A DNA stretch of 63,722 nt, filler included, from Hyphochytrium catenoides (taxonomy: Eukaryota > Protista > Hyphochytriomycota): NCBI GenBank assembly GCA_900088475.1. It is 7 parts of 7 records of this genome, joined end to end, with 100 filler letters (N's around TTAATTAATTAA, not from the genome) between each part and the next. Parts side by side here need not be neighbours in the genome. Positions count along the whole stretch, not along the records: positions 35,091 to 57,409 come from FLMG01002423.1; 6 more parts are not named here. One strand, given 5' to 3'. Made by a program: the position numbers and the translations under genes. Of this stretch, positions 38,227-57,509 are shown one piece after another (position 1 is the first letter of the stretch; every line of letters starts with the position of its first letter). The notes below the pieces were generated by a model. It saw only the letters and a program-made list of their open reading frames with translations. It was not told the origin of the DNA and searched no databases.

Positions 38227-41200
38227 CTAAGCAGACTCTATCTCTCCTTGTGCATCCCGAATTGATCTCTCCTGAGGACCCTTATCTGAAGTGGCTGACC
38301 CTTCCCGTGCAACGGAGGCGTCCTCATGGAGTATTGATGCGGCCTCTTCAGGGCTTATTTTGAAGCTCTTGATAGGAGTCGCTTCAACCTCTCCCTCGAC
38401 TAGTTCTGCTGTCTCACGGGAAGACACAGATTGAGAAGAAGGCACCGGGTCCACTGGAGTGCTACCTCCCGCCACAAGGAAGGAAGCTTTGGTTGAGAGC
38501 AGTTGAGCTGCAAAAGGACATAGAGTTGGTTATTCCATGGCAGCAGCTGTCATTTCATAGTGAAATATCAACTACTACTTTTGGGCCCACGAATCTCCCT
38601 CCTTTTCTACGCTCTACCCTCTACTGTTGTCGCACGGTGAAAGTCTCCCTGTCCTACCTTCTGTAGCGGTGCTGTGAAGATCTCTAGCAGGCTTAATCTT
38701 GTGGAGTCGATTGTGTCTGAATGCTCGCAGCGCCCTGATCAGGCGCTGATAGGCGACATAGTGCTTCGTACTGTAGAATGACTTCATGTCCGTCCCTGTT
38801 GAGAGAAGCGCGGTTGGAGTGATGATGCCAGAGCGAAATCTAGCACTTGTCCCTGATGCCTGGGTTCAATTCTAAGGCACTTCTCCAATGCACTCTATCG
38901 TCTCCCACCGGAACCGTTTACCTTCTCTCACTCGCTCTCCCTGTCGCTGTCTTTCTCTATTAAATGTATGTGCATGTGCCCCTATCTGTCGCTCTATCTT
39001 CTCTAGCAAGATGCTATAGTAGGTTCTCCTGCCGAGGACAATGCGCTCTCAAGAAGTTGGCTTTCTTTCTTACCGGTGATCCGGCTTCCAATCCTCCTTT
39101 CTAACATGACGCTCTTGAGTTCTTTGTATAGCTCATTGTTCTCTGGTATCGGAACCCACTTCTTCCCTTCACTCTCTAGCTGGGTCTCCAGCACGAACAT
39201 TGCAAGTCCAGCCAAGTAGTCATAGTAGTAACAGCTAGGCCCTAAGCGAGGATGATGCACGAGGGGTACCTCCAAGGCGGCTGAAAAAGGTAGGGGATTA
39301 GGCAGATGGACGTGGGAGCCAATGTGAGAAGGGCTAAGAGGGACACAGAGGCCAAGGAGTGAGAGGACAGAAGTTATTGAAGAGAAGGGAACATCACAAG
39401 ATGAGCGGAGAGCGCAATACGAGAGAGTGAGCGCTCTCCTCTGCGAGCCTCACCTAAGAGCCCATAAACCTCCTTCATTGAAGGATTACTGGCTGGGAGC
39501 TCAGGAGCGTTTTTTGGAGGAGGCTCCAACAGCCTAACGATGACGTTGTCTCGTAGCAGATTCTTCGCGATGACAATCATAGACGACACCGTGGTGTGCC
39601 CTTCCGCTTCTACGTCAAACTCCGACCAGGTTGTGGTCACCTCGTCCATCATCTCTGTGGATATGAGCTATTACAGGCAGAGATGGGAGATTGAACGGAG
39701 AAGAGGAAAGAAAAGCTTGAGCATCAATGTTTCTAGACCAGTCTCACACTAACTGGTGCCAGGAAAGGCGATCTATCCGCTTCCAGAGCTCCCTCTCTCG
39801 CACCCACTCCGACCATTTTAACCACGCGTACTAACTGTACGACAAGAGGTTCTACGCCATCTTACCGTCTTAATCTCTGAGCCTGACTCCATGAATCCTT
39901 CCAGCACTACAGCGACAAACAGATTGATCATGATGAACGAGACGCTGATCATATAGCTCAGCATATAGAAGAACCCAAGGTCAGTGCCACAGCCTTGAGG
40001 AGGAATGCAGCATTTTAAGTTGCCTGCGGAAGCCGAGTAGAAGAAGAGAGAGCCTTAGACAAAACGAGACACGCTGCTAGCCTTTGAGAACAACAAAACT
40101 CCTCACTGCTCTGCCTTTCTCAATCTCTTTCTCCTATGTCTTTCACCCTTTAATTTCCTTGTTGTCCAGCTCTCTCGGTACTCGCCTGCAATGACATCTT
40201 CCGTCGATAATGTAGAAGGGCAAATCTTCCTGCCCTTGCTGAAGCCACAGGTGATCTCCGAGACGGAGTCATCCACTGGTTGACACCCAGGAGATCGCCG
40301 TGCAAGAGCGTACATCATGTCCGTCCATTTATCTCCGGTAGCCGAGCGAATCATGATTTGAAAGGCACCGAAGAATGAGGCGAAGTTTGACTGTTGTTGG
40401 AGTCCAAAATGAAGGAAGTTAGAAGAAACATTTAGACGTCAGCCGTGAAAAATGGGGACAGGCCATCAAGAGTAACGTCTGAAGCGAAGGCAGCAAGCTA
40501 TGGAGTCTCAGAGACGCATGGGTCTACAATGGAGGAGCAATAGAAGATGGCCCTTAAGGGCAAAAGTATTCAAGGAGCCGCATTGGGCATAGAGGAAATA
40601 AGGGCGAGAGGGTCAGAGGCAGAGATGACCTCCTCCACCTTTTGCGTCTCCTACCGTTTCCGTGATGACCTCAAAGTCCCAGGCAACAGCTGCGAAAAGC
40701 TGGTTTCCAATAACGGCATATATTGCGATCGTGAGGAGCAGCAGGGCCAAGAGGTTCCTAGACGAAAAGACCAAGGTTATCGTGATGGTGATGTGCCAGG
40801 GCCACGCTACTTAGCTCAGCGAAGATAATTGCCAGAGAAGGATCAGAAACAGAGGTTGGACGGGTGGCAGAAGGTTGCGTAGGGCTTTAGCAGAGTTGTA
40901 TGGCTAGAGAATGCGAGCGGCTCTTTAGCCACAAGAGGCTAGTTGAGCCATTTGAGCATTGACGAAGTAGAAGATGTCACAGTCAATTTAGAGCCATTAC
41001 CTTAGGGAATACCATGTCAGGGATAAGGTGATAAACATGGACCTTAAAGCCTTCGCATAGTAGACGGTCTGCAAGAGCTTCAGCACTCTACAGACCACCA
41101 AAATAGCCTGAAGACTAGGCCGCTGCTGGAAGGGAAGAATGGGGAGGAGGATGGCAAGGAAGAAGGCCGCGATGCCGAGAAGCATGTCGAAGAGAAGGAG

Positions 41201-44200
41201 CCTATGGTGGATGACTGCTCGCCTCAGAACATAAACGTGAAGGCAGACGTTGAAGAGGTAGAAAGCTGAGCACAAGATGTTGAAGACCTCCAAGGCTATG
41301 GCAAAGGTTGGATGCTGTCCAAAGTACGAGAGGCTCATACTTAGAGCGTTCAAGAGAAGAACCGTCCGCATCGCCATACGCCAATGCTTTTTCGAGACGA
41401 ACTTCCATACCAAAAAACGGAGCTTCTTCAGCGGTGGAGCCCTAAAGGATTGTACAGAGATAGGAGGAGTGAAAGGGGTTGATGAGCTGCAACTAGAAGA
41501 GATCTCAACGTCTCTGGCTAAACGCTAAGAGTGTTGGCCTCATAGAGCTGCTTGCGACGCGCGAAATAGGGGGAGCTCTTACCTAGGATGCGGCTCCGGG
41601 CGGGCTACGTATGGTCTTGGCTTCATTCGGATCATCAATCGTTGCGTCTTAATCCATGCCCTCTGGCTCTCGTTCAGTGCTTCCAACCCCATTTCCTTCA
41701 GCTCATTGAAGTTATCAATGACTACGCCCACAAAGAGATTCAGGACAAAGAACGAGCAAACCACTACGTAGAGAGCAAAGATAGGAGCCCAAAGAGCGTT
41801 ATACCCTCGAACGGGCTCCATGTCAATCCCACGGTGGGCCATAGCTGCGAACATGGCGTCCACCCAGCCAGCCATCGTGGTCATCTCTAGGAGAGTGCGG
41901 AAGCCAACAAGAGAGTTATCAAAGCTTTGATCTAGATATTTGACCCATGTAAACCCCAAGCACTCGCAGACGAAGCGGGATTTAGGAGCAAGAGAGCCGT
42001 AAGAGGCTTGATAGGAGTCGAGACATGTGGAGTTCATAGCAACTGACAACTGCTCTTGGAAAGAGGAAGAGAGGTTGGACCAGGGCTGTGGGTAGGTCAC
42101 GGTTTCTTTGTATTGTGGAAGAGTGAGATTCAGGAGGCCGTAGCTGCTGCTGCTGTCAAAAGCTGCCAGGATTTAAACGGTTGCAGAATGGAAAGTTAGA
42201 GTACAGTTAGGCTTAAGGGAACAGAGAGTTGCATGAACGGTCGTCAACCAGATGAAGAGAGGAAAAATTTTGCATGCTATTGAGCAAGAGAGAATGTCAT
42301 GAAAGTACTGACACCTATAGGGATAGGAACACGGAGCAAACGGACTGTTTTGACACGTAAGATGATCTTCGAAGGTGCTTACCGCTATAGTCGCACCTCC
42401 TAAAGGCGCCCTTCAGGAAGTTCACAAAGCCAATATCAAAGATGTAGATGAACAGAGAGCAGACAATAGTCGCGTTAAGAATGGCGGGGAATGAGCGGAA
42501 GAGGCAGCCCAAGACTTCTTGCATCCCTCTGCTTTTGTTCACAATTCTCAAGGGCCGAAGTCCTCGAAAGCCACGAAGTGGGGAGATGGCATCCGAACGG
42601 AGTATGAAGTCTGGTCACAGACGAGGCGTTAGATAATATCCATCGACAAAAGGCAAATGTGCAGCTGGGGTTAGATTAGAAAGAGTTAAAGAACCTTCAA
42701 AGCGGAAGGGGAAGAGGAGACAGAGAAAGACAGAGGGAGAAGATAGATAGATAAACAGAAAGAGAGAGAGGGAGAGGCTGAGAAGCAGTCAACATAAGGG
42801 AGCCAGATCCAATAAGAGTATCCAAAAGAAGGTGAGGCGTCCTTAGACTATTGCCGCTTACCTGACAGCAAGCTAACTACCACCACGAACAGGTCCAGAA
42901 TATTCCATCCGTCCGAGAGATAGTCAGAAGGCCCAAACGCAAACAGCTTAAGCACAACCTCTACAGAGAAGCAGATTGTGATGCCTTTGTTGGTCCAGGC
43001 AATATACCGCGCTGTGCTAGAGTCTGCACGATTGGTAGGGGTGTCAACTATCAAAATAGCGAGAGAAGCGAGAGTGAGAAGAGTCATCAGGACCTCGAAC
43101 CACCCGCTGGCGGCAACCAATCGAACCCCACGTTTCACTCTGCCCACAAGCGAGAGAGAAGGAGAGACAGGGATGCCTAATTTGGTTCCTTTCAAACCAG
43201 CAGCATCCTTGGTTTGGGGCTTCCTAGGCGATGCTTCTGTACATCTGATCTGTGAAGCTTTCCTCCTTTCCACATCTGCGCTCTTTCCGTCTCCACTTTC
43301 TGTCGCGCTGCTGGCCTCTTCTCCCTCCTTTCCTCCTGCAGGATCTGGAGCTGGGGCCACTTTCTTTTGACCTGAGCCAAGCAGCCTCTCGAATGGCTTT
43401 TGGACGTGCATTGACATCTTTTTAATGTGCGTGAGGAGCGCTTCCTGGGCGCCGAGAATAGAGTCCCTGCCTTGCTTTATCTCTTCGAGGTTTTGAAAGT
43501 TAAAGAGAAGGATGGAGAAGAAGAGATTCATCACTACGTAGTTTCCTCCCATAATGAGAGAGATATAGTAGGGAGCAGCCTTCCATCCAACAGCCCGCCA
43601 CGTGTCATGAAACACTTCTTCCCACTTCTCCCCTGTAATGATCTGACGGTGGAGAGAAGTATCGAAGAGAAAGAAACTTCATAATCAGAGATGGGGGGTC
43701 GATAGGAGAAGATGGAGTCGGGTAGGAGAGTAGTAGGAAGTTCAGTGGGAGATAGAGGCACTTTAGCCGTGAAGTAAGGAACAGCAAAGCCCTTGTTTTC
43801 AAGGAAAAAGAGCGAGAGGAGAATGATTATGAATGAAGTGGAGCCAATGTAGATAAAAATAACCCATAAGAGCTTGCCGCACACGTAGCTCGTTTGCAAG
43901 GACGGAAGCAAAGGGGCTTTAGACGAACGACTGACAGAGCGGGCCGTACTGACCTGGAAAACGGTGAGCATGGAGATGCCAATATTATCAAAGTTGCTCT
44001 CCGGCTTTTGGATCTCCGTGTTATTCGCTGTATAAGGGATATAATAGCCATCGGCATCAAACTGGATCTGGTAAGCGAAGAACTGCATGCCCAGCAGAGC
44101 ATAGATGTAGATGAACAGAGTCAATAGCACCAGGAAAGACTTCAACTCATTGACGGTGTTCCAAATGACCTGACATGGGCAGACCGGATGACAGGGTTAT

Positions 44201-47200
44201 AGTGGATAGACGCCAGAGAAGCTGCCGGTGGCAATAAGAAGACTGAAAGAAAGCGAGAGAGACGATACTGTCAATGAAGATGAGAGCAGAAGTTTAACAG
44301 GGTTGCAACGGCAGACGATTCATACTGTCTGATAGTGAGAAAGACTCACTTCGGCGTTAAAAAGGAGAAGAGAGTAGGGATCGAAGTGCCGTCATTCTCT
44401 AAAACGAGTCTTAGAGAAGTGGAGGATAGCGAGGTTGCATCCCATTATAGGAATGCTAAGCTAAGGACTTAGAGGTGTTGGAATGACAGATGATGAGGTC
44501 TTTCCAATACCTGGAGAAGGACATTGAGACTCTTCCAACTCTTGGCCAACTTGAATATACGGAATAGCCTAAGTCCGCGCAAGACAGAGAGAGCTCGATT
44601 GGCTTGTCCTTGAACAACAGTTTCGGTAGAGTGGCAGCATGTAGCGTGCGTATCAAAGATTAGATGCGTAACCTGCATAACACTGCCGAAAGTCGTCTGC
44701 TGCTTTGCTAACGTTCTCACAACATTGCCCACTATTATGTCTCTAACTGCCTCCGTAGTCGGTTCCCTAGTCACTGCTCTTCTCTTTTCTTCTTACCTGC
44801 TTGACTGCTGGCTCCTAAAGAAAAGGAGGGAGGGTTGACAATGACATCACAGAGTCCAAAGATCACGAGAGCAGCGTCCAGCAATCCGAGCACGGAGTTA
44901 AATGTGGCCTTTGGTATCGCGATGGCGTTCAGTAGGAGCTCAATTGCTATGACGATAACGTGAGTAAGTTTGGGTCAACAAACTTATAGTAAGGGCCCGA
45001 GAAAGAGACCGAGCACAAGAGCTAGCAAGGTAACGGGATACAGTGGCTAGCGGTCTAATAAATCTGTATGGACAGCGACCTAAGTCGATGACTCTTCCTT
45101 TAGCAGGAATAGTAGAGCAGAGGGTAAAAGGAATCCTCAGCCCAGAAGCTCAGAACAGAAGGCCGCTGAAGTAGATAAGCGAGAGATAACGGGAGACATC
45201 CAGAGTCCGAGGGTTCAAAGTGGAGAGAGGGAGATGGGATAAAGGTTCAGAGCTCCTACCGAATATTAAACAGCAGATGGCATTGATCCATCCAGAGACA
45301 AAGTCGTCTAGCTCCGAGGAGGGATATCTCACCATCCCGAGGGCGATAACGTTCAATAGCACCACAACTCCCATCACTGCCTTGTACGTAGTGGTAGTCA
45401 CCAGCCGAAATATATGACGGCGTAAGGGATGAGATGGAGCTTCGCCTACAGAGGGACTTGCGAAGGAGGAGGCCATGGGAGAACCATTAGCCTTAATATC
45501 CCGGAACAAAAGCTAAAGAACTGACTCTGTGGCAGTAAGGATACATCCAAGGCAGCCAATCTCTCAATAGAGAGGTGCAGCAGGCACACTAACGCCTCTC
45601 ACCCCATAGTTGCCCTCTTAGCAATAGCTGAGCCACTGGGCAGCTCCTTCATTTTCTCAGCAAAGCCATACGCCGAGAAGTTGTCCCAAACCACAGCTTT
45701 CAACAGGTTCGCCAGGAAAAATGCGCCAAACATGATAAGACCTGAGAAGAAAATACCGCAGAAAGGGACGGAGTAGCTGTCCATCGTCTAAGAGAAGTAG
45801 GCATAAAGGAAAGATGCAAGAAGGAGAGGGAGAAGAAGGCATCGTTAGAAAGGGGCGGACGTGAGGGCCAGAGTTTATGGAAACAGCCACTATGTCCCGC
45901 CCAACTAAACGAGCTTTTAGGATAAGGAAAGGAGGAACGTAAGTGGGAATGAAGCGAAAGACCGCGACGTGAGAAAGGAAGCAATGACGAGAAAGTGATG
46001 CGCCAGGCGCAGGAGAGACTTGCCATGAAGAGGATACTAGACCAGCCAGCTTGCGTCATACACTGGAAAATTGTAACCACCGCTGCCAGGATGTTATCGA
46101 AGTAGGTCAATGACCTACTCCGCGCCAGACGCAGCAAAAATCATTAGTACAGCACACGTAAGTGGTTCACGGAACAGAGGCTAGTAATGAAAATACAGAG
46201 AGAGGATGATCTAACCGTAGAATTAAGCTGAGCAAGAAGGAGAATGAGAGATGTCAGAGGGCCGACCAGTTAAGCTCTGCAATATATTGGCCGTGGTCCA
46301 TAGCCTTAGTACTCTTGAAGCGTTTGTTCCCAAACATATCGTAGTTAGATCCGCAGGTCTGATTTAAGGGACACGTGTGCATCCCTAGCGATACCCCGGA
46401 CACACAGAAAGCAAATTTTAGGTTTTTCTTCGAGAAGCGAAGCCAGACGAAGCCACATAGAAGGACCACATGCATGGAACAAGCGGAAGCTTGGCCGTGC
46501 ATTCAGAGTAAGAAATAAAGTAAAGAGAACCTACCCTTCTGTGCTAAGGGAGTCCCGGTGCACACTCTTCCATCATCAGGCCAAGCAACAGGCCAGAAGC
46601 AGTCTCTTGGTATCCTCCATGGTGACGAGAGGAGGTCCCAAGCAGGGTCATCGTTCTTATCTGGAAGGCACCGCCACTTTTGAATGGAGCAGACGGTGAT
46701 AGAAAGGGAAAGTTAAAGTCAGTAGCGAGCAAAACTCTTAGCAAAATGAATGGCAAAACAATCAGACAGGGGACACTGAGCTTTGGGAAGAGCCGAATGC
46801 GCATAAGAAAGCATGAGATGCTTTGGCTTTCTTAAGTACCTTTTCTAGCTCTGCGTGATCTAGAGTTAAGGTCGCTGCCAGACTGGTGAAGTCTACAGAA
46901 GAGTTGTAGGTTTCCGGCAGCTTAATGGGCCACGGCGTCGCCCTACATCGGGGATGAAGAATTCCCTTCCACAAATGTACGCCTAGGATTCCGAAGACAA
47001 GGAAGAAAAAGAGGAGGACGACTGCAAGAGAGCGCAAGGCTGGTAACGAGCGTATAAGCCCCGTGATCAACGCCTTGAGCTCTTTATATGGAAAACGAAG
47101 CCACAAGGAGGACGGAAGAGAGCTACGATGAGATCTAGACCATGGAAGAGCTTTAAAGTAGTAGTACTAGAGTATGAAGAGTATGGTGACAACAACAATT

Positions 47201-48718
47201 CTCTAGATAGGATAGTCAAACAGATTGAAGTGCCATGGCTAGCCATGTGGACTTGAAAAGAACAAAGCTATATGGGGGAACGGCCAGTGGCCTCCCTTCA
47301 TGAACCACAAGCATATCTTAGACCAAGAATGACACAGGATGAGTGAGTGATTGGGTCCCCCAAGCGAAGAAAGATTAATGGGTCTCAAAGGCGCCCGTGT
47401 TGCTCTATGAGTATTACCTGGTATCCCTGTCAGAGTTCTAAGTGGACGAAGCACCCGAAAGACACGCAAGACTGATACGTTGGGTATGGAGGGAACGTAG
47501 CTCAGGGCGCTGGATGTAAGAGAGCAAGAGAGCAAAAAGCAAGCGATTTGTGAGAGCAGAACAACATGGTGCGTAAACGCGACAGAATGGCCCAGGACCT
47601 ATAGCGCGATTGGAGGAGCCAAAGTTTGAGAGTTAGACAGAAGTCAGTAGGACGAGACTTCGCCCGATGTGGCAATAATGTGGACGCTGCCCAGCGCAGA
47701 GTAGATAACCATTAATCAAAACGTAGACATGCTTCCGAGAATCGCGAGGGATAAGGAAGGGAACAAAAGAATTGGGCGGCGGGAAGCGCAACACCTATCG
47801 AAAAAGAGATCTCTGGGACGATTGTATTCTCGGGCAAGACAACTGCATGAACACATCTCTTTCCCTTCCTCACCTTGCCACAACCATTGTGAAGTCGAGC
47901 ACATTGAAGCCATCGCTAAGATAAGTGTTTTTGCCCTTATATAAGCCAAACGCTATGATCTTGATAATGCACTCCACAGTGAATATTCCCGTAGATACGG
48001 CGTTAGAGTAAGTGAGGAGGCGATTGCGGGCTGAGCCCTCCGTCTTAAGAGTTCCATTAGGGTGAACCTGCCACATTGATGACGGACAAGAAGATGGGGG
48101 ATGACAATCTGGAAGAATTTGCAATGACGGGAGAAGGAGAGCGAAAGCAGAATCGAGAGCCTAATGTATGTTGAAAAGAAGACCAAACAACACCTGTACG
48201 ACATACATACTAAAGGCTGTTCCGGTCAGGGCATGTTACCTTTGAATAGTCCGCCAGCCCAAGCGCTAACGAACTTAGAATGGTTATGATGGTGATGAAG
48301 AGCTCGAAGGTTCTCTTGGACACTATCCACAAGCAGAGTTTTCGGCATGGATTTGTCTTGCTGAAAAGTAACAGCGAGCGGTCTACATAGTTTGCCTGGT
48401 ACGAGGCGCAGGCGTAAGGAGAGGAGGGCGGTTATGAAGAGTGACCATAGAGAAATGGGTCCTTTGGTGGGAGGTAACTAACGATAGGTCTTGATCATTG
48501 AGTAGATAATAGAGGAAGACGACGTTTGAGATAACAGACACAGAAAGCTAGCCGGGGAATCAAAAGACTGTCGAAGATGCTCTACAATGTCCGCTGACCT
48601 GTGTTAAAAGCCAAGGATCTTTGAAGCCTTGCTCAGCCTTTGCTGCAGAGATTGCAGCTTGACGTTTATCCTCGTTAGGGCCCTCTCTGGACTCCCCCTG
48701 CTGGCCCGCTTGTTCCAT
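38227..48718 (-). CDS. Four-domain voltage-gated cation channel alpha subunit (Cav/Nav-like), many exons
   Basis: N-terminal SLLLFSKTNPCRKLC; S4 segments VLRVFRVLRPLR, VLRGLRLFRIFK, LRGFRGLRPLR; four pore loops FQCMTQAGW, FQIITGEKW, EMTTMAGW, RSATGDKW; S6 FVLNLFVGVVIDNF and INLFVAVVLEGF; EF-like and IQ-like C-terminal segments; start codon inferred. Confidence 0.93.
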
Positions 48719-49785: not shown

Positions 49786-51449
49786 ATGAAGCTGGCCCTC
49801 CAACTTGTAGGAGCCTTTCTGGCTGCCGCCATTTTCAAGGTATCGTGATCAAGAGTTCTGAGGCTGTTCCCTTTTTATGAGCTAAACGGCAACCTCCAGA
49901 CAACGGATGCCACCGTAGTCGAACTTAACGCTGAGAACTTTTACCCCAAGGTTACGCAAGGGACATGGTAAGTTGATTGCCAATTTTGATTCTGTCTTTG
50001 CCTTAGAGCTGTTATGCAGGATGGTCAAGTTCTACGCCCCTTGGTGTGGTAAGTTTCTAAGGTGGCGCTCCATGACAACCCCTTCCCAACAAGTCTAAAT
50101 CTACCATCTGCATAGGGCATTGCAAGGCTCTGGCTGGCCCTTATCATGACTTCTCGGAGATGGATCTTGATGTAAGATGACGTGGTCTTGGATTCTATGG
50201 TTTCCTAGCTTTTGACCAGGTGGCTTGATCTAGGGTGCAAAAGTAGGAAAGTTGGATTGCACTGTCTCGCGTGCGATCTGCAGCCGGCTAGGCATCAGAG
50301 GGTATCCGACGCTTAAGGTTATCTCTGACTCCCAGCAGTATGAGTACAGCGGCAGCCGCGATCCCAAGGCAATGGCTGCCTTTGTGACGGAAGGGTACAA
50401 GGTACGGAACGCAACTGCTTAAACGCTTTCAGCATAATATAGCAACTAAAATATATATAGGAAGCTCCATCAGTGCCGCTTCTGTCTGAGTCGGACCACG
50501 GTAAGCTACAACCTTTCTCATCGTACTTCTGCGTGGGTTCGTCTATTGCCATCGCTCATGTCACTGTGAATTTCCAGAGAAGAAAGAGCGGGACATGCAA
50601 GAGAAGCTACGGAAGCTGGAGGCGAGGAGTAAAGTTGTGACGCTTTCCAAGGACCAGTTTCTGAAGGATGTCATGAACAGCACGGACCCTTGGTTCGTCA
50701 AGTTTTACGCCCCCTGGTGCGGTCATTGCAAGCAATTGTCTCCCACTTGGACACAGCTTAGTATCGAGCTGGACGAGAGTGGAAGCAAGAGCAAGATTGG
50801 CAAGGTCCAGCTTGCTTACCTCACCGATAGTACCTTTTACCTCGTATTTACTGAATAACTATCTTACTCATGACTCATCAGGTGGATTGTACTGAGGAGA
50901 GATCCCTCTGCGGTCGTTTAGATGTGACGGGATACCCCACACTCTACCACTTCCAGGGTGGGCAGTATCGGAGGTTTAAGGGCAGTCGCACATTTGAAGC
51001 GTAAGAGGCAGGACCTTCCTCTTCTCGAATTGGCTGCATCTCATCATGTGGGCCTTTCTTAGGCTCAATAACTTCGTGCAGCATGGATGGGAAGAGGTAG
51101 AGGCAGAGCAAGTGCCAGTGGAAGATAAGCTATCTGACCGCCTGCAGGTAGACAGAGAGATATTTCGGTTTGGATCTTACGCGAAGGTTGCGATGCTCTT
51201 GTGCTAATATGTCATGTATAGGATTACTTTGCGGAAAACCCCCTTTACGCCGTGCTTCTGGGGATCTTCTTCGTCCTTTCCTTCTTTTTTGGCATCCTGA
51301 AGCTCCTGGATACGGTATTCCCAGACGAAGGGTTTATTCCTTGGGCTGCGCCAAAGGAATCGAGCACTCAGACTGTTGAAGGAGAAGAGAAAGATACTAC
51401 TTCTACACCTGCTCCTGAGAAGTCTGCGGAGGCTAAGAAGAATGAGTAA
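49786..51449 (+). CDS. Membrane-anchored PDI/thioredoxin-family protein with two WCGHC domains
   Basis: Signal peptide [17 protein letters not shown]; two [12 protein letters not shown] motifs (the first split by an intron); GYPTL twice; C-terminal TM helix and KKxx ER-retrieval end (AKKNE). Confidence 0.9.
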
Positions 51450-54824: not shown

Positions 54825-56973
54825 CTAGCGGAAAGGACTACGACTGCGGCCTCTGGGTCTCATCGGCGGCAAAGCACCGGGTGGGCCTTGTCTGGGTGGG
54901 GACCTATAATATATACAGTGAGTGTCTGCGCGGCTTAGACAACCATTAAGAACAACTGTACCTGCTGCGACTGCGCGCCCAACGACGTGGTGGAGATGCC
55001 CTCACTGGTACATCTCTTGGGGGCATAGCACCAGCATCCTGGCGATAGACGTCCCTTCTTGGCGGACTGCGGCGAGATGCTTCGGGGCGTCTATAATTAT
55101 CGTTACGGTAGGAGTCCCGAGTTGCGGGATAGTCTGGGTGAGCTCTGAGAGGCGGATCCCGCCTATCATCTTTCCAAGCTGCTCCTCGTGGTGCTTCTCC
55201 CCTCGCTGGCTCCGGATAGCTTGACCTTGATGGCCTATCATACTCTCGATATCGTCCGGCTGAGGGCGGTGGAGGATCATCGCGATAAGCAGGCCGTCTT
55301 GCGTCATCAGGATAATCACGACGGGAAGGTGGTGGATAGTCTCTGTCGTATGGCCGTCCAGGAGGATTGTCATAACCACGGTCGCCGTCCCTTCTATCAT
55401 AGTCCCTGGACCTTCCTCCGCCAGCTCGGTCCCTACTCCGGCTGCGACTACGGCCTCGACCAGCTTCCATACCGCGATCGTCATAACCTCGACGGTGATC
55501 ATCCTCCCTTCTTTCTGGGTAGTAGCCACCGCGAGTTGATGGAGGAGGTGGGCTGCGGAAGTCTCTATCACGACCATTGTATCTGTCATAATCCCGGGAA
55601 TCCGAAGGCGGACCCCGTTCGTACCCCCTTTCCCTACTTCTTCCAGCGCGGTCACGGGCTCCAAACCCAGCATCTTCTCGGGGCATATCGCGTCTGGATG
55701 CAGATTGGTGGGGTTGAGCACCTGACGCCCGTGGCCTTCACAGAGGTAGCGTTAACTCAGTAATCGATCTCAAAAGCCTACGAAACTGTGCGCCCGCGAA
55801 AGATAGTGTGGTGCGTAAAGTACCTTCCTTTAGGTTGATTGAAGTCCAGCCGGAGCACCGCACCTCCTTCTAACTCACGACCATTATAAAATGCGTCCTC
55901 TGCGCTCTTTAGGTCCCGAAAGTCAACAAAAGCAGACTTGTCACCACTCTTCTTTATCGGAAGCATTGTAACATTTTCCACTGTTGGTTACCATTGTGGG
56001 AAAGACCAATGTGCATCAGAAGGGCGATATCCAGGTTTAGGCCAGCTTTTTATGGGCGAAACGTAGAAAGACGGCATTACCTTCTCCAAAACGATCGAAA
56101 TGCCTTTTAAGTCCGTCCGCCTGCACTGTTGGAGGGATGCCAGCAACGTAGATATGACGAGTGGGCATTTTGGTGCTACCCGTGGAACCAGGCTTTCCTC
56201 CTGATGGCGGACCCGCAGCTGGAATTTTGTCTTGGCCATTCTCCTTAGAGTCCATCGAGTTGCGGCTGGCTGGTGGGACTGCTCCTGTAGCACGAAAACC
56301 ACATAAAAAAGGTGATTGTAGGTATAAGCCCTTTATCATATGCAGCGCTCGTGAAAGGCGGAGCTAAACCCAATACGAGCCCGCAACCATTGCGCTGGAG
56401 TCCACACCTCTGTCGCTTGTGGCCAGCTCCACTTTGATGGCCCTGCCGTCAATGTCTTGGTTGTTCATGTGTGCAATAGCGTCCTAAGGTAGGAGTAACA
56501 TAAATGAGCCCATAGTACCATCCTACCACCGAAATCTCCAGATAACCATTGCCAATACCAGCCAGCCCCAAAGGAAAGCCTAGAAAGGGCTTCGATGACA
56601 ACCAAGCTACTTTCGAGACACTGCGACTGGCCGCTAATCCTCGCGGAGAATGCCATAAATGAAGCTGGATGCCAGAAATCCACATTCAACTGCCGCCCCA
56701 ACCAAATCCCACCACGCAACCACTTTGGAGACAGTGTAAAGACACGAGAAGACCTACTTCTGCATCTCTTTGGTCTTCATATTCCACGAAAGCGAAACCT
56801 TTCCGCTCGGGCATATCAAAGCTCACAATCTTTCCCCACTGGTATCGAGAAACAAAAGAATGCTTAGCGGCGCTTCGATGGTCCTGAGGAAAATTACCTA
56901 CGTTCTCAAAGCTCTTGAGAAGGGACTCCTTAGAGGCATTGTACGAGATGTTCCCGACGTAAACCCTCGGCAT
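54825..56973 (-). CDS. SR-like RNA-binding protein with two RRMs and an RD/RS-rich tail
   Basis: RNP2 VYVGNI and RNP1 KGFAFVEY; second RRM IYVAGI / SAFVDF; long R/D/S/P/Y-rich exon ending GRSRSPFR. Confidence 0.88.
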
Positions 56974-57509
56974 CTTGTGCAACGTGAACCCTCGAACAGG
57001 TAAGTGCTGCTCTAGTAACTGGCGACAGAGAATCGCCCGTTTTGATGGGTTTGAGGGCCAGACGACTGCTGCAGCCTCTGCTGACCTACTCCTTCGGGAA
57101 AAACGCGAGGCTACTTTCAAGCTCTGTGAAGATCGTTGAGATCTTCAGGTGAAATATCTGGATCTGCTGTTATCCAACACAAACAGCTCTACGAGCAATG
57201 CCTGGAAGCAAACACACAGCGTGCGTCTATAATAAAGGAGGGCTTACAGATCTCCGTGCCTTGTGTGAGGAACTGTAGAAAGCTAGGCAACACTGGCTTA
57301 CCCACCTTTCCTTGTCTCCTGTCCTTCACCTCCTACAGCGGCTTAACCCTCCAAGGACGAAAGTTGCGAGGAGCGAAGGTTTGCACGCAATCTTGCGCGA
57401 ATGTTGATTNNNNNNNNNNNNNNNNNNNNNNNNNNNNNNNNNNNNNNNNNNNNTTAATTAATTAANNNNNNNNNNNNNNNNNNNNNNNNNNNNNNNNNNN
57501 NNNNNNNNN

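Follow-up and report, generated by a model that had tools for sequence, protein, structure and literature searches.

Explanations of ion selectivity in four-domain voltage-gated channels usually rest on a few animal rings of pore-loop residues, one residue from each of the domains I to IV (DI to DIV), namely EEEE, EEDD, DEKA, DEEA and EEKE. A lysine in the ring restricts permeation to Na+, the aspartate directly after the DII ring residue (position +1) is a 'Ca beacon' found in all animal Cav channels, the glutamate at DII +4 is a 'Na beacon' conserved in Nav1 and Nav2, and the Nav2 channel of S. rosetta (DEEA) is non-selective, admitting Na+, K+ and Ca2+ to roughly the same extent (PMC6259924). 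For Ca selectivity, acidic residues at +1 are important, and further unusual rings are on record among protists, such as D/D/D/D, A/G/K/E and a T/E/N/D filter in Chlamydomonas that was itself published as 'unusual' (Pozdnyakov et al., 2018; PMC5824947). Here we analyze a window of 63,722 nucleotides (the whole stretch of joined DNA parts, filler included) from Hyphochytrium catenoides (assembly GCA_900088475.1), in which one gene encodes a four-domain channel with the ring A-E-A-D and a lysine directly after each of the two acids. The gene is intact and selectively constrained, and we lean slightly towards reading its product as a divergent voltage-gated channel whose two-carboxylate ring would leave it weakly Ca-selective and permeable to monovalent cations or non-selective.

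The source piece (positions 35091-57409 of the window) has about 50% G+C, and its minus strand holds an intron-rich eukaryotic channel gene that we model from 48718 to 39003, in 22 exons with 1656 codons plus a stop and no internal stop codon. The four pore motifs named by the sequence-only reading lie on the minus strand, each at the very codon it gave, and the ring can be read directly from them: Ala377 in DI (T-Q-A-G-W, GCT at 46050-46048), Glu672 in DII (T-G-E-K-W, GAG at 43630-43628), Ala1101 in DIII (T-M-A-G-W, GCT at 41872-41870) and Asp1413 in DIV (T-G-D-K-W, GAT at 40333-40331). All four loops retain the T-x-x-x-W frame. In phmmer comparisons with solved structures, FQCMTQAGW of DI aligns with FQCITMEGW of Cav1.2, QIITGEKW of DII with QILTGEDW of Cav1.3, LEMTTMAGW of DIII with LQVATFKGW of Nav1.5, where the alanine falls on the position of the DEKA lysine, and RSATGDKW of DIV with RSATGEAW of Cav2.3. 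Because every one of these alignments is free of gaps, the A/E/A/D ring is no alignment artefact.

The +1 residues are G/K/G/K, the lysines being Lys673 in DII (AAG, 43627-43625) and Lys1414 in DIV (AAA, 40330-40328), which agrees with the earlier observation of a lysine after both acids. No lysine occurs at DII +1 in any of 224 homologues, and lysine or arginine occurs at DIV +1 in 5 of 214. Glutamates stand at DII +3 and +4, a feature unique to this channel among the aligned relatives, and aspartates at DIII +4 and DIV +4; the DI loop has no acidic residue at all and has lost the Asp at +4 that is common in relatives. The pore mouth as a whole has six carboxylates against two lysines, and with the acids at DII +3/+4, DIII +4 and DIV +4 the outer vestibule is still net negative. 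The description of the filter as roughly charge-neutral therefore holds for the ring and the +1 positions but not once the +3 and +4 carboxylates are counted. The DII loop has the length of a Cav loop, with no gap against Cav1.3, and is not shortened as in Nav channels.

The assignment to the four-domain Cav/Nav type is borne out by Pfam Ion_trans matches on exons of all four repeats, by collinear matches of four-domain homologues (tblastn, phmmer) and by PDB matches to the DI, DII, DIII and DIV loops in the correct order. The S4 segments of DI, DII and DIII have the usual four or five charges, with Arg or Lys at every third position, whereas DIV S4 retains two of the five regularly spaced charges found in relatives. 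The III-IV linker opens with the conserved DNFN, and its latch is degenerate, reading E-A-L-N with a deletion of 4-6 residues where relatives carry a hydrophobic triplet followed by Thr (LLT, FLLT or IFMT). The I-II linker has about 35 residues. Regular expressions found no pattern like the alpha-interaction domain (AID; GY..WI) and none of the IQ type, and the C-terminal exons match neither GPHH nor Ca_chan_IQ in Pfam.

With these features the channel departs from each of the animal families. Cav1 and Cav2 combine an EEEE ring and Asp at DII +1 with an AID and a C-terminal IQ motif, where this channel has AEAD and Lys and lacks both motifs; it also lacks the EEDD ring of Cav3, and Cav3 proteins fall outside its clade in our tree. 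Nav1 and Nav2 have DEKA, DKEA or DEEA with a shortened DII loop and an IFM-type latch in the III-IV linker, none of which is seen here, and the Glu at DII +4, which is present, does not alone define these families. Nav2 and Nav mutants with DEKA changed to DEAA resemble our channel in having fewer than four ring carboxylates and small neutral residues; their rings are, however, asymmetric, DIV alone being neutral, and they have one residue fewer in the DII loop. NALCN (EEKE or EKEE) and fungal Cch1 are, like this channel, derived members of the four-domain group in which the ring is altered and S4 is poor in charge, the latter being read as indicating weak voltage dependence (PMC5824947, PMC6259924). 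Unlike NALCN, with its ring lysine and several charge-poor S4 segments, our ring is free of lysine and only DIV S4 is depleted; NALCN chains in the PDB score far below Cav and Nav (E about 1e-12 versus 1e-25), and our trees contained no NALCN or Cch1 sequence. TPC1 and TPC2, which are two-pore channels, likewise have a two-fold symmetric filter built from two alternating kinds of pore loop, but they are dimers of two-repeat subunits and match our protein weakly (E 0.002-4e-7), so the resemblance is one of design only.

The closest known system is a clade of EEEE channels that includes the Phytophthora cactorum 'Sodium channel protein', Nothophytophthora, Pythium insidiosum KAJ0412146.1, Phaeomonas parva and many environmental sequences. 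Its members share with our channel four repeats of six transmembrane segments, T-x-x-x-W loops, charged S4 in DI to DIII, a short III-IV linker with DNFN and the lack of an AID; the A-E-A-D ring, the lysines at DII and DIV +1, the depleted DIV S4 and the degenerate latch set our channel apart. In an IQ-TREE analysis (LG+G4, 42 rows, 1290 columns; a site-homogeneous model, hence more prone to long-branch effects) the channel was placed with 100/100 support in a clade of 34 channels, its position inside this clade being left unresolved. The clade, which comprises Phytophthora, Nothophytophthora and a cluster containing the ochrophyte P. parva, is EEEE throughout except for a nested TESD subclade, and the names of related clusters point towards stramenopiles without placing the organism of the window. 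Our channel has the longest branch of the tree, 1.6 against a median of 0.52, or about threefold. The nearest relative (P0001, EEEE, 39% identity) is encoded by an intronless 4.2-kb gene, in contrast to the 21 introns found here; it lies on compact metagenome scaffolds (ENA KOPF15 samples) beside genes for RIO2 kinase, a RING-finger protein and RICTOR, and shares no synteny with the window.

The neutral/acid/neutral/acid arrangement is not confined to this gene. Small uncharged residues in DI and DIII with carboxylates in DII and DIV also mark the Chlamydomonas T/E/N/D channel, an environmental clade with T/E/S/D and T/D/S/D rings (P0149, P0153-P0156, P0095), the volvocine S/E/S/E channels (Gonium pectorale, Edaphochlamys) and the A/D/S/D protein P0059. 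In these filters DIV is mostly Asp, as it is here; their +1 residues are N, D, A, G or S where ours are Lys, and they keep a charged DIV S4 and a hydrophobic latch. In the IQ-TREE topology the TESD clade is nested elsewhere within the 34-channel clade, beside the EEEE protein P0053. FastTree had paired our channel with the TESD protein P0149, a join flagged with a long-branch warning, which IQ-TREE did not recover, and one clade of our channel with the TESD proteins was rejected by the approximately unbiased (AU) test (p 0.006), so that common descent with P0149 and P0153-P0156 is not upheld. The neutral DIII state requires four changes on the tree, and forcing a single origin on the nine neutral-DIII rows, a group defined after the tree had been seen, costs 373 log-likelihood units (p-AU 9e-47). 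Thus, the full pattern has at least four origins among the sampled protist homologues (the TESD clade, volvocine SESE, ADSD and this gene), and it is by convergence that DI and DIII lost their carboxylates while DII and DIV retained them. The two-fold design seen by the sequence-only reading is therefore real but not unique to this gene, with T/E/N/D already in print (PMC5824947). The fourfold recurrence argues for a workable functional state; the repeated neutralization of DI and DIII points to a preferred two-fold-symmetric solution, one that matches the way in which the two ancestral duplications paired DI with DIII and DII with DIV.

What does appear to be new is the precise combination of an A-E-A-D ring and +1 lysines, which we found in no homologue and no paper. 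A HMMER search with the DIII exon against 1.84 billion representative proteins gave 3240 matches, and we examined the rings of the best 150: 66 were complete and collinear, 57 of them EEEE, and no AEAD ring was among these 150. The best identity in this search was 37% (37-39% for the closest relatives overall), and because the best match is so distant, the organism's own protein and any close orthologue must be missing from the library. Alternating rings among the matches were P0149 (T/E/S/D), P0095 (-/E/S/D), P0059 (A/D/S/D), and P0099 and P0129, both read as S/E/S/E when inspected, the former being Gonium pectorale KXZ52367.1; with P0149 as query we also obtained P0153-P0156 (TESD or TDSD, sequences from the Joint Genome Institute, JGI) and the Edaphochlamys protein P0210. 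The reverse alternation, acid in DI and DIII with neutral DII and DIV, was not seen among 269 proteins; a neutral residue in DIV alone occurred in Nav-type rings (EEEG, -EEG, -EEA, -EKA). Scanning JGI metagenomes with the DIII exon gave 203 pattern matches, MAGWVDAM included, with no relative among them, and the ESM Atlas returned generic Ion_trans clusters only. A word search with the 276-residue exon found no match, but it covers only proteins of similar length and says nothing about full-length relatives. Neither AEAD together with 'selectivity filter' nor the four pentapeptides occurred in any channel paper that we found or in the supplement of PMC5824947. The novelty lies in the exact ring, in the paired +1 lysines and in their occurring along with charge depletion of the DIV sensor and loss of the latch, not in the half-neutral two-fold design, and current views are not overturned, because unusual protist filters are already documented. 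The gene is nevertheless a naturally evolved, constrained channel with two ring carboxylates and two adjacent lysines, which makes it relevant to the evolution of Na+ and Ca2+ signaling and to the +1 'beacon' as a position for tuning the pore.

Two side observations concern these relatives. P0154 and P0155 of the T/E/S/D clade have ankyrin-repeat Pfam domains in addition to Ion_trans, an unusual fusion for a four-domain channel, and the ankyrin-fusion members all come from environmental assemblies (JGI or Logan). Of the S4 segments compared from the PMC5824947 supplement, the DI and DII S4 of the two Perkinsus marinus channels are most like ours, a possible hint of the organism's affinity; their DIII and DIV S4 differ.

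How would such a pore conduct? The two carboxylates of the high-field-strength ring, Glu in DII and Asp in DIV, lie on opposite sides of the pore, with Ala in DI and DIII. We propose that cations would still be conducted while the high-affinity Ca2+ site of EEEE channels would be lost. Neutralization of glutamates in the EEEE ring of Cav1.2 is said to lower Ca2+ affinity, and Nav mutants with DEKA changed to DEAA reportedly lose discrimination among Na, K and Ca. Without a high-affinity Ca2+ site the channel would be only weakly Ca-selective, admitting monovalent cations non-selectively or with some preference between Na+ and K+; permeation is thus probably monovalent or non-selective. Voltage gating would be carried by DI to DIII, and fast inactivation may be slow or absent. 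A bolder version, which we put forward as tentative at best, is that the AEAD ring and the two +1 lysines, along with carboxylates displaced outwards, make up a new design for selectivity, convergent with three other protist lineages in which DI and DIII were neutralized and coupled here to the loss of the DIV charges and the latch, which would provide a persistent Na+ or monovalent, or a leak-type, conductance (a role like that of NALCN) derived from a Cav-like ancestor by a route unseen in animals.

The lysines raise the alternative that the channel is Na+-selective by a new route, with the lysines at DII and DIV +1 reaching the filter like the lysine of DEKA or EEKE and the DII +4 Glu acting as 'Na beacon'. 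Both lysines lie directly beside the ring carboxylates, no aligned relative has Glu at DII +3/+4, and a ring lysine is a known determinant of Na+ selectivity, and the DII +4 Glu is conserved in Nav1 and Nav2 (PMC6259924). Here, however, both lysines are at +1 and so outside the ring, the DII loop is unshortened, unlike that of Nav, and we found no precedent in the literature; we regard this route as unlikely. We give equally little credence to a channel that is still Ca2+-permeable or Ca2+-preferring through the ring pair together with the outer carboxylates at DII +3/+4, DIII +4 and DIV +4. The excess of carboxylates over lysines around the pore mouth would favor it, as would a clade made up mostly of EEEE channels, presumably Ca-permeable, but half of the high-field-strength site is gone, a lysine occupies the 'Ca beacon' position and the DI pore loop offers no acidic residue.

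That the gene is under constraint can be judged from polymorphism. Contigs of three public DNA runs (X1, X2 and X3) were placed on positions 40200-46150 and their differences mapped to the gene model. Among the 40 differences listed, 30 are exonic, of which 28 are synonymous and two are conservative non-synonymous changes (I to T, L to V); the ratio of non-synonymous to synonymous polymorphism (pN/pS) is 0.022 over 763 synonymous and 2492 non-synonymous sites, and the binomial probability of at least 28 synonymous changes in 30 is 6e-16. All 12 listed indels are intronic, and the DIII pore exon has synonymous changes only. The pattern speaks for strong purifying selection and at the same time for the modeled reading frame. 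In the listed contigs that cover them, the ring codons show no change: DI in X3 record 24, DII with its Lys codon in X1 record 5 and X2 record 13, DIII in X1 record 2, X2 record 11 and X3 record 19, and DIV with its Lys codon in X3 record 17. Both Ala codons accordingly read GCT and not GAx, no frameshift interrupts the 22 exons, and the exact filter with its lysines has not turned up in a homologue or a paper; the rejection of random decay by the sequence-only reading is supported. Together, a long branch and strong present-day purifying selection suggest a paralogue that changed function and then became fixed.

The same data bear on a voltage sensor or scaffold that conducts poorly or not at all, in which constraint would act on the voltage-sensor domains and not on ion flux. 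Such a role would fit the fully charged and conserved S4 of DI to DIII beside a degraded filter, and the longest branch in the tree. The T-x-x-x-W frame, the pore helices and S6 are nonetheless conserved and under purifying selection, as the silent changes of the DIII pore exon illustrate, and a ring pattern on which four lineages converged is suggestive of a pore that conducts, so we consider this quite improbable. A pseudogene, or sequencing or assembly errors at the Ala codons, is largely refuted and deserves hardly any weight. In its favor, the organism has no RNA run on record, a non-canonical GC-AG intron adjoins the DI pore exon and the branch is very long; against it, the 4.97-kb frame is open through all 22 exons, pN/pS is 0.022 with the listed indels confined to introns, the ring codons are unchanged in the covering contigs and the piece holds no alternative pore-loop exon.

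Several points weigh against the reading that we favor, an intact, constrained channel with weak Ca selectivity. The gene model and its splice junctions are predicted from DNA only, and exons 1, 2, 10, 11, 18, 21 and 22 have frame and splice sites as their basis. The polymorphism sample consists of the 40 best-supported base differences out of 160, and all three DNA runs stem from a single study, so that the data behind the window's own assembly may be among them. What we say on selectivity and gating is predicted by analogy, and turret residues can also set selectivity (PMC5824947).

The gene model was built by chaining stop-free segments via frame-consistent splice sites, guided by tblastn of homologues. 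The frame runs from the ATG at 48718, with an in-frame stop upstream, to the stop codon at 39005-39003. Exons and introns both average about 226 nt; 20 of the 21 introns are GT-AG, and the GC-AG intron at 46023-45788 (donor GCAAGT at 46023), directly after the DI pore-loop exon, has the gene's only non-GT donor, there being no GT donor at this site that yields an open frame. A second pore-loop-like exon is absent from the whole piece 35091-57409.

All exons are on the minus strand. Exon 1 (48599..48718, donor CAG|GTCAGC) carries the start codon and N-terminus and, lacking homologue support, is the least certain. Exon 2 (48240..48395) encodes DI S1 and was placed by frame and GT-AG sites, exon 3 (47874..48067, donor GTGAGG) DI S2-S3, with tblastn high-scoring segment pairs (HSPs) of homologues, and exon 4 (47418..47509, tblastn) DI S4, with four Arg at every third position in the core 47475-47431. 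The DI S4-S5 linker, S5 and start of the turret lie in exon 5 (46840..47081; tblastn, Pfam Ion_trans), and the extracellular turret continues through exon 6 (46535..46676), which is Cys/Trp-rich and matched by tblastn HSPs of P0001, P0004 and P0009, and exon 7 (46267..46384, tblastn). Exon 8 (46024..46114) carries the DI pore loop with Ala377, and exon 9 (45603..45787; Pfam Ion_trans, tblastn) DI S6 and the short I-II linker. In the second domain, S1-S2 (exon 10, 45260..45456) and S2-S3 (exon 11, 44797..44946) precede exon 12 (44511..44608), with DII S4 (R,R,R,K,K; core 44588-44541) at 51-70% identity by tblastn, and exon 13 (43954..44169, tblastn), with S5, turret and the first half of the pore helix, ending in TVFQ. 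Exon 14 (42862..43642; Pfam, tblastn) spans the DII pore loop T-G-E-K-W-E-E, DII S6, the II-III linker and DIII S1-S3. Exon 15 (42383..42610, tblastn) holds DIII S4 (core 42578-42534), the S4-S5 linker and S5, and exon 16 (41583..42162; Pfam, tblastn) the DIII turret, pore loop T-M-A-G-W, S6 and the III-IV linker at 41716-41612. The fourth domain begins with S1-S4 in exon 17 (41001..41486; S4 at 41101-41042, acceptor alternatives at 41441 or 41492) and continues with S5 in exon 18 (40655..40757), the pore loop T-G-D-K-W-T-D in exon 19 (40249..40390; Pfam, tblastn) and S6 in exon 20 (39866..40023; Pfam, tblastn). The proximal C-terminus after S6 (exon 21, 39454..39667) has no Pfam match, and exon 22 (39003..39280), with the C-terminus and stop, is less certain.

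The read contigs show some further features of the locus. At 44508 one base is missing relative to the window in contigs of all three runs, at full depth; the affected base is at +3 in the intron that follows the DII S4 exon (donor GTATTG in the window), and the GT is retained either way. In all three runs (40200-46150) indels occur at about half depth, many contigs are 90-95% alike, and the listed differences put synonymous divergence at 3.7% or more; the half-depth indels and the 90-95% contigs suggest that the samples contain two haplotypes or strains that have diverged. The stretches 42588-42786, in the intron after exon 14, and 43150-43176 are GA/CT-rich and of low complexity, with a depth 5-7x that of neighboring sequence. 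A contig joint from 43176 to 42756 with 17 foreign letters recurs in all three runs, with GA-rich sequence at both ends; it probably reflects an artefact of the assembly graph rather than a deletion allele, and positions 42867-43213 are spanned intact by a full-depth contig.

Rfam and tRNA scans gave no match. Elsewhere in the piece, an exon of a thioredoxin/PDI-A6-like protein lies on the plus strand at 50505-50855, with a WCGHC motif and a Pfam Thioredoxin match (E 8e-15), its relatives being environmental fragments only. On the minus strand at 54949-57144 there is a gene in which a long low-complexity exon rich in Arg, Asp, Tyr and Pro comes after an RNA recognition motif domain (Pfam RRM_1); its product looks like an SR-type splicing factor.

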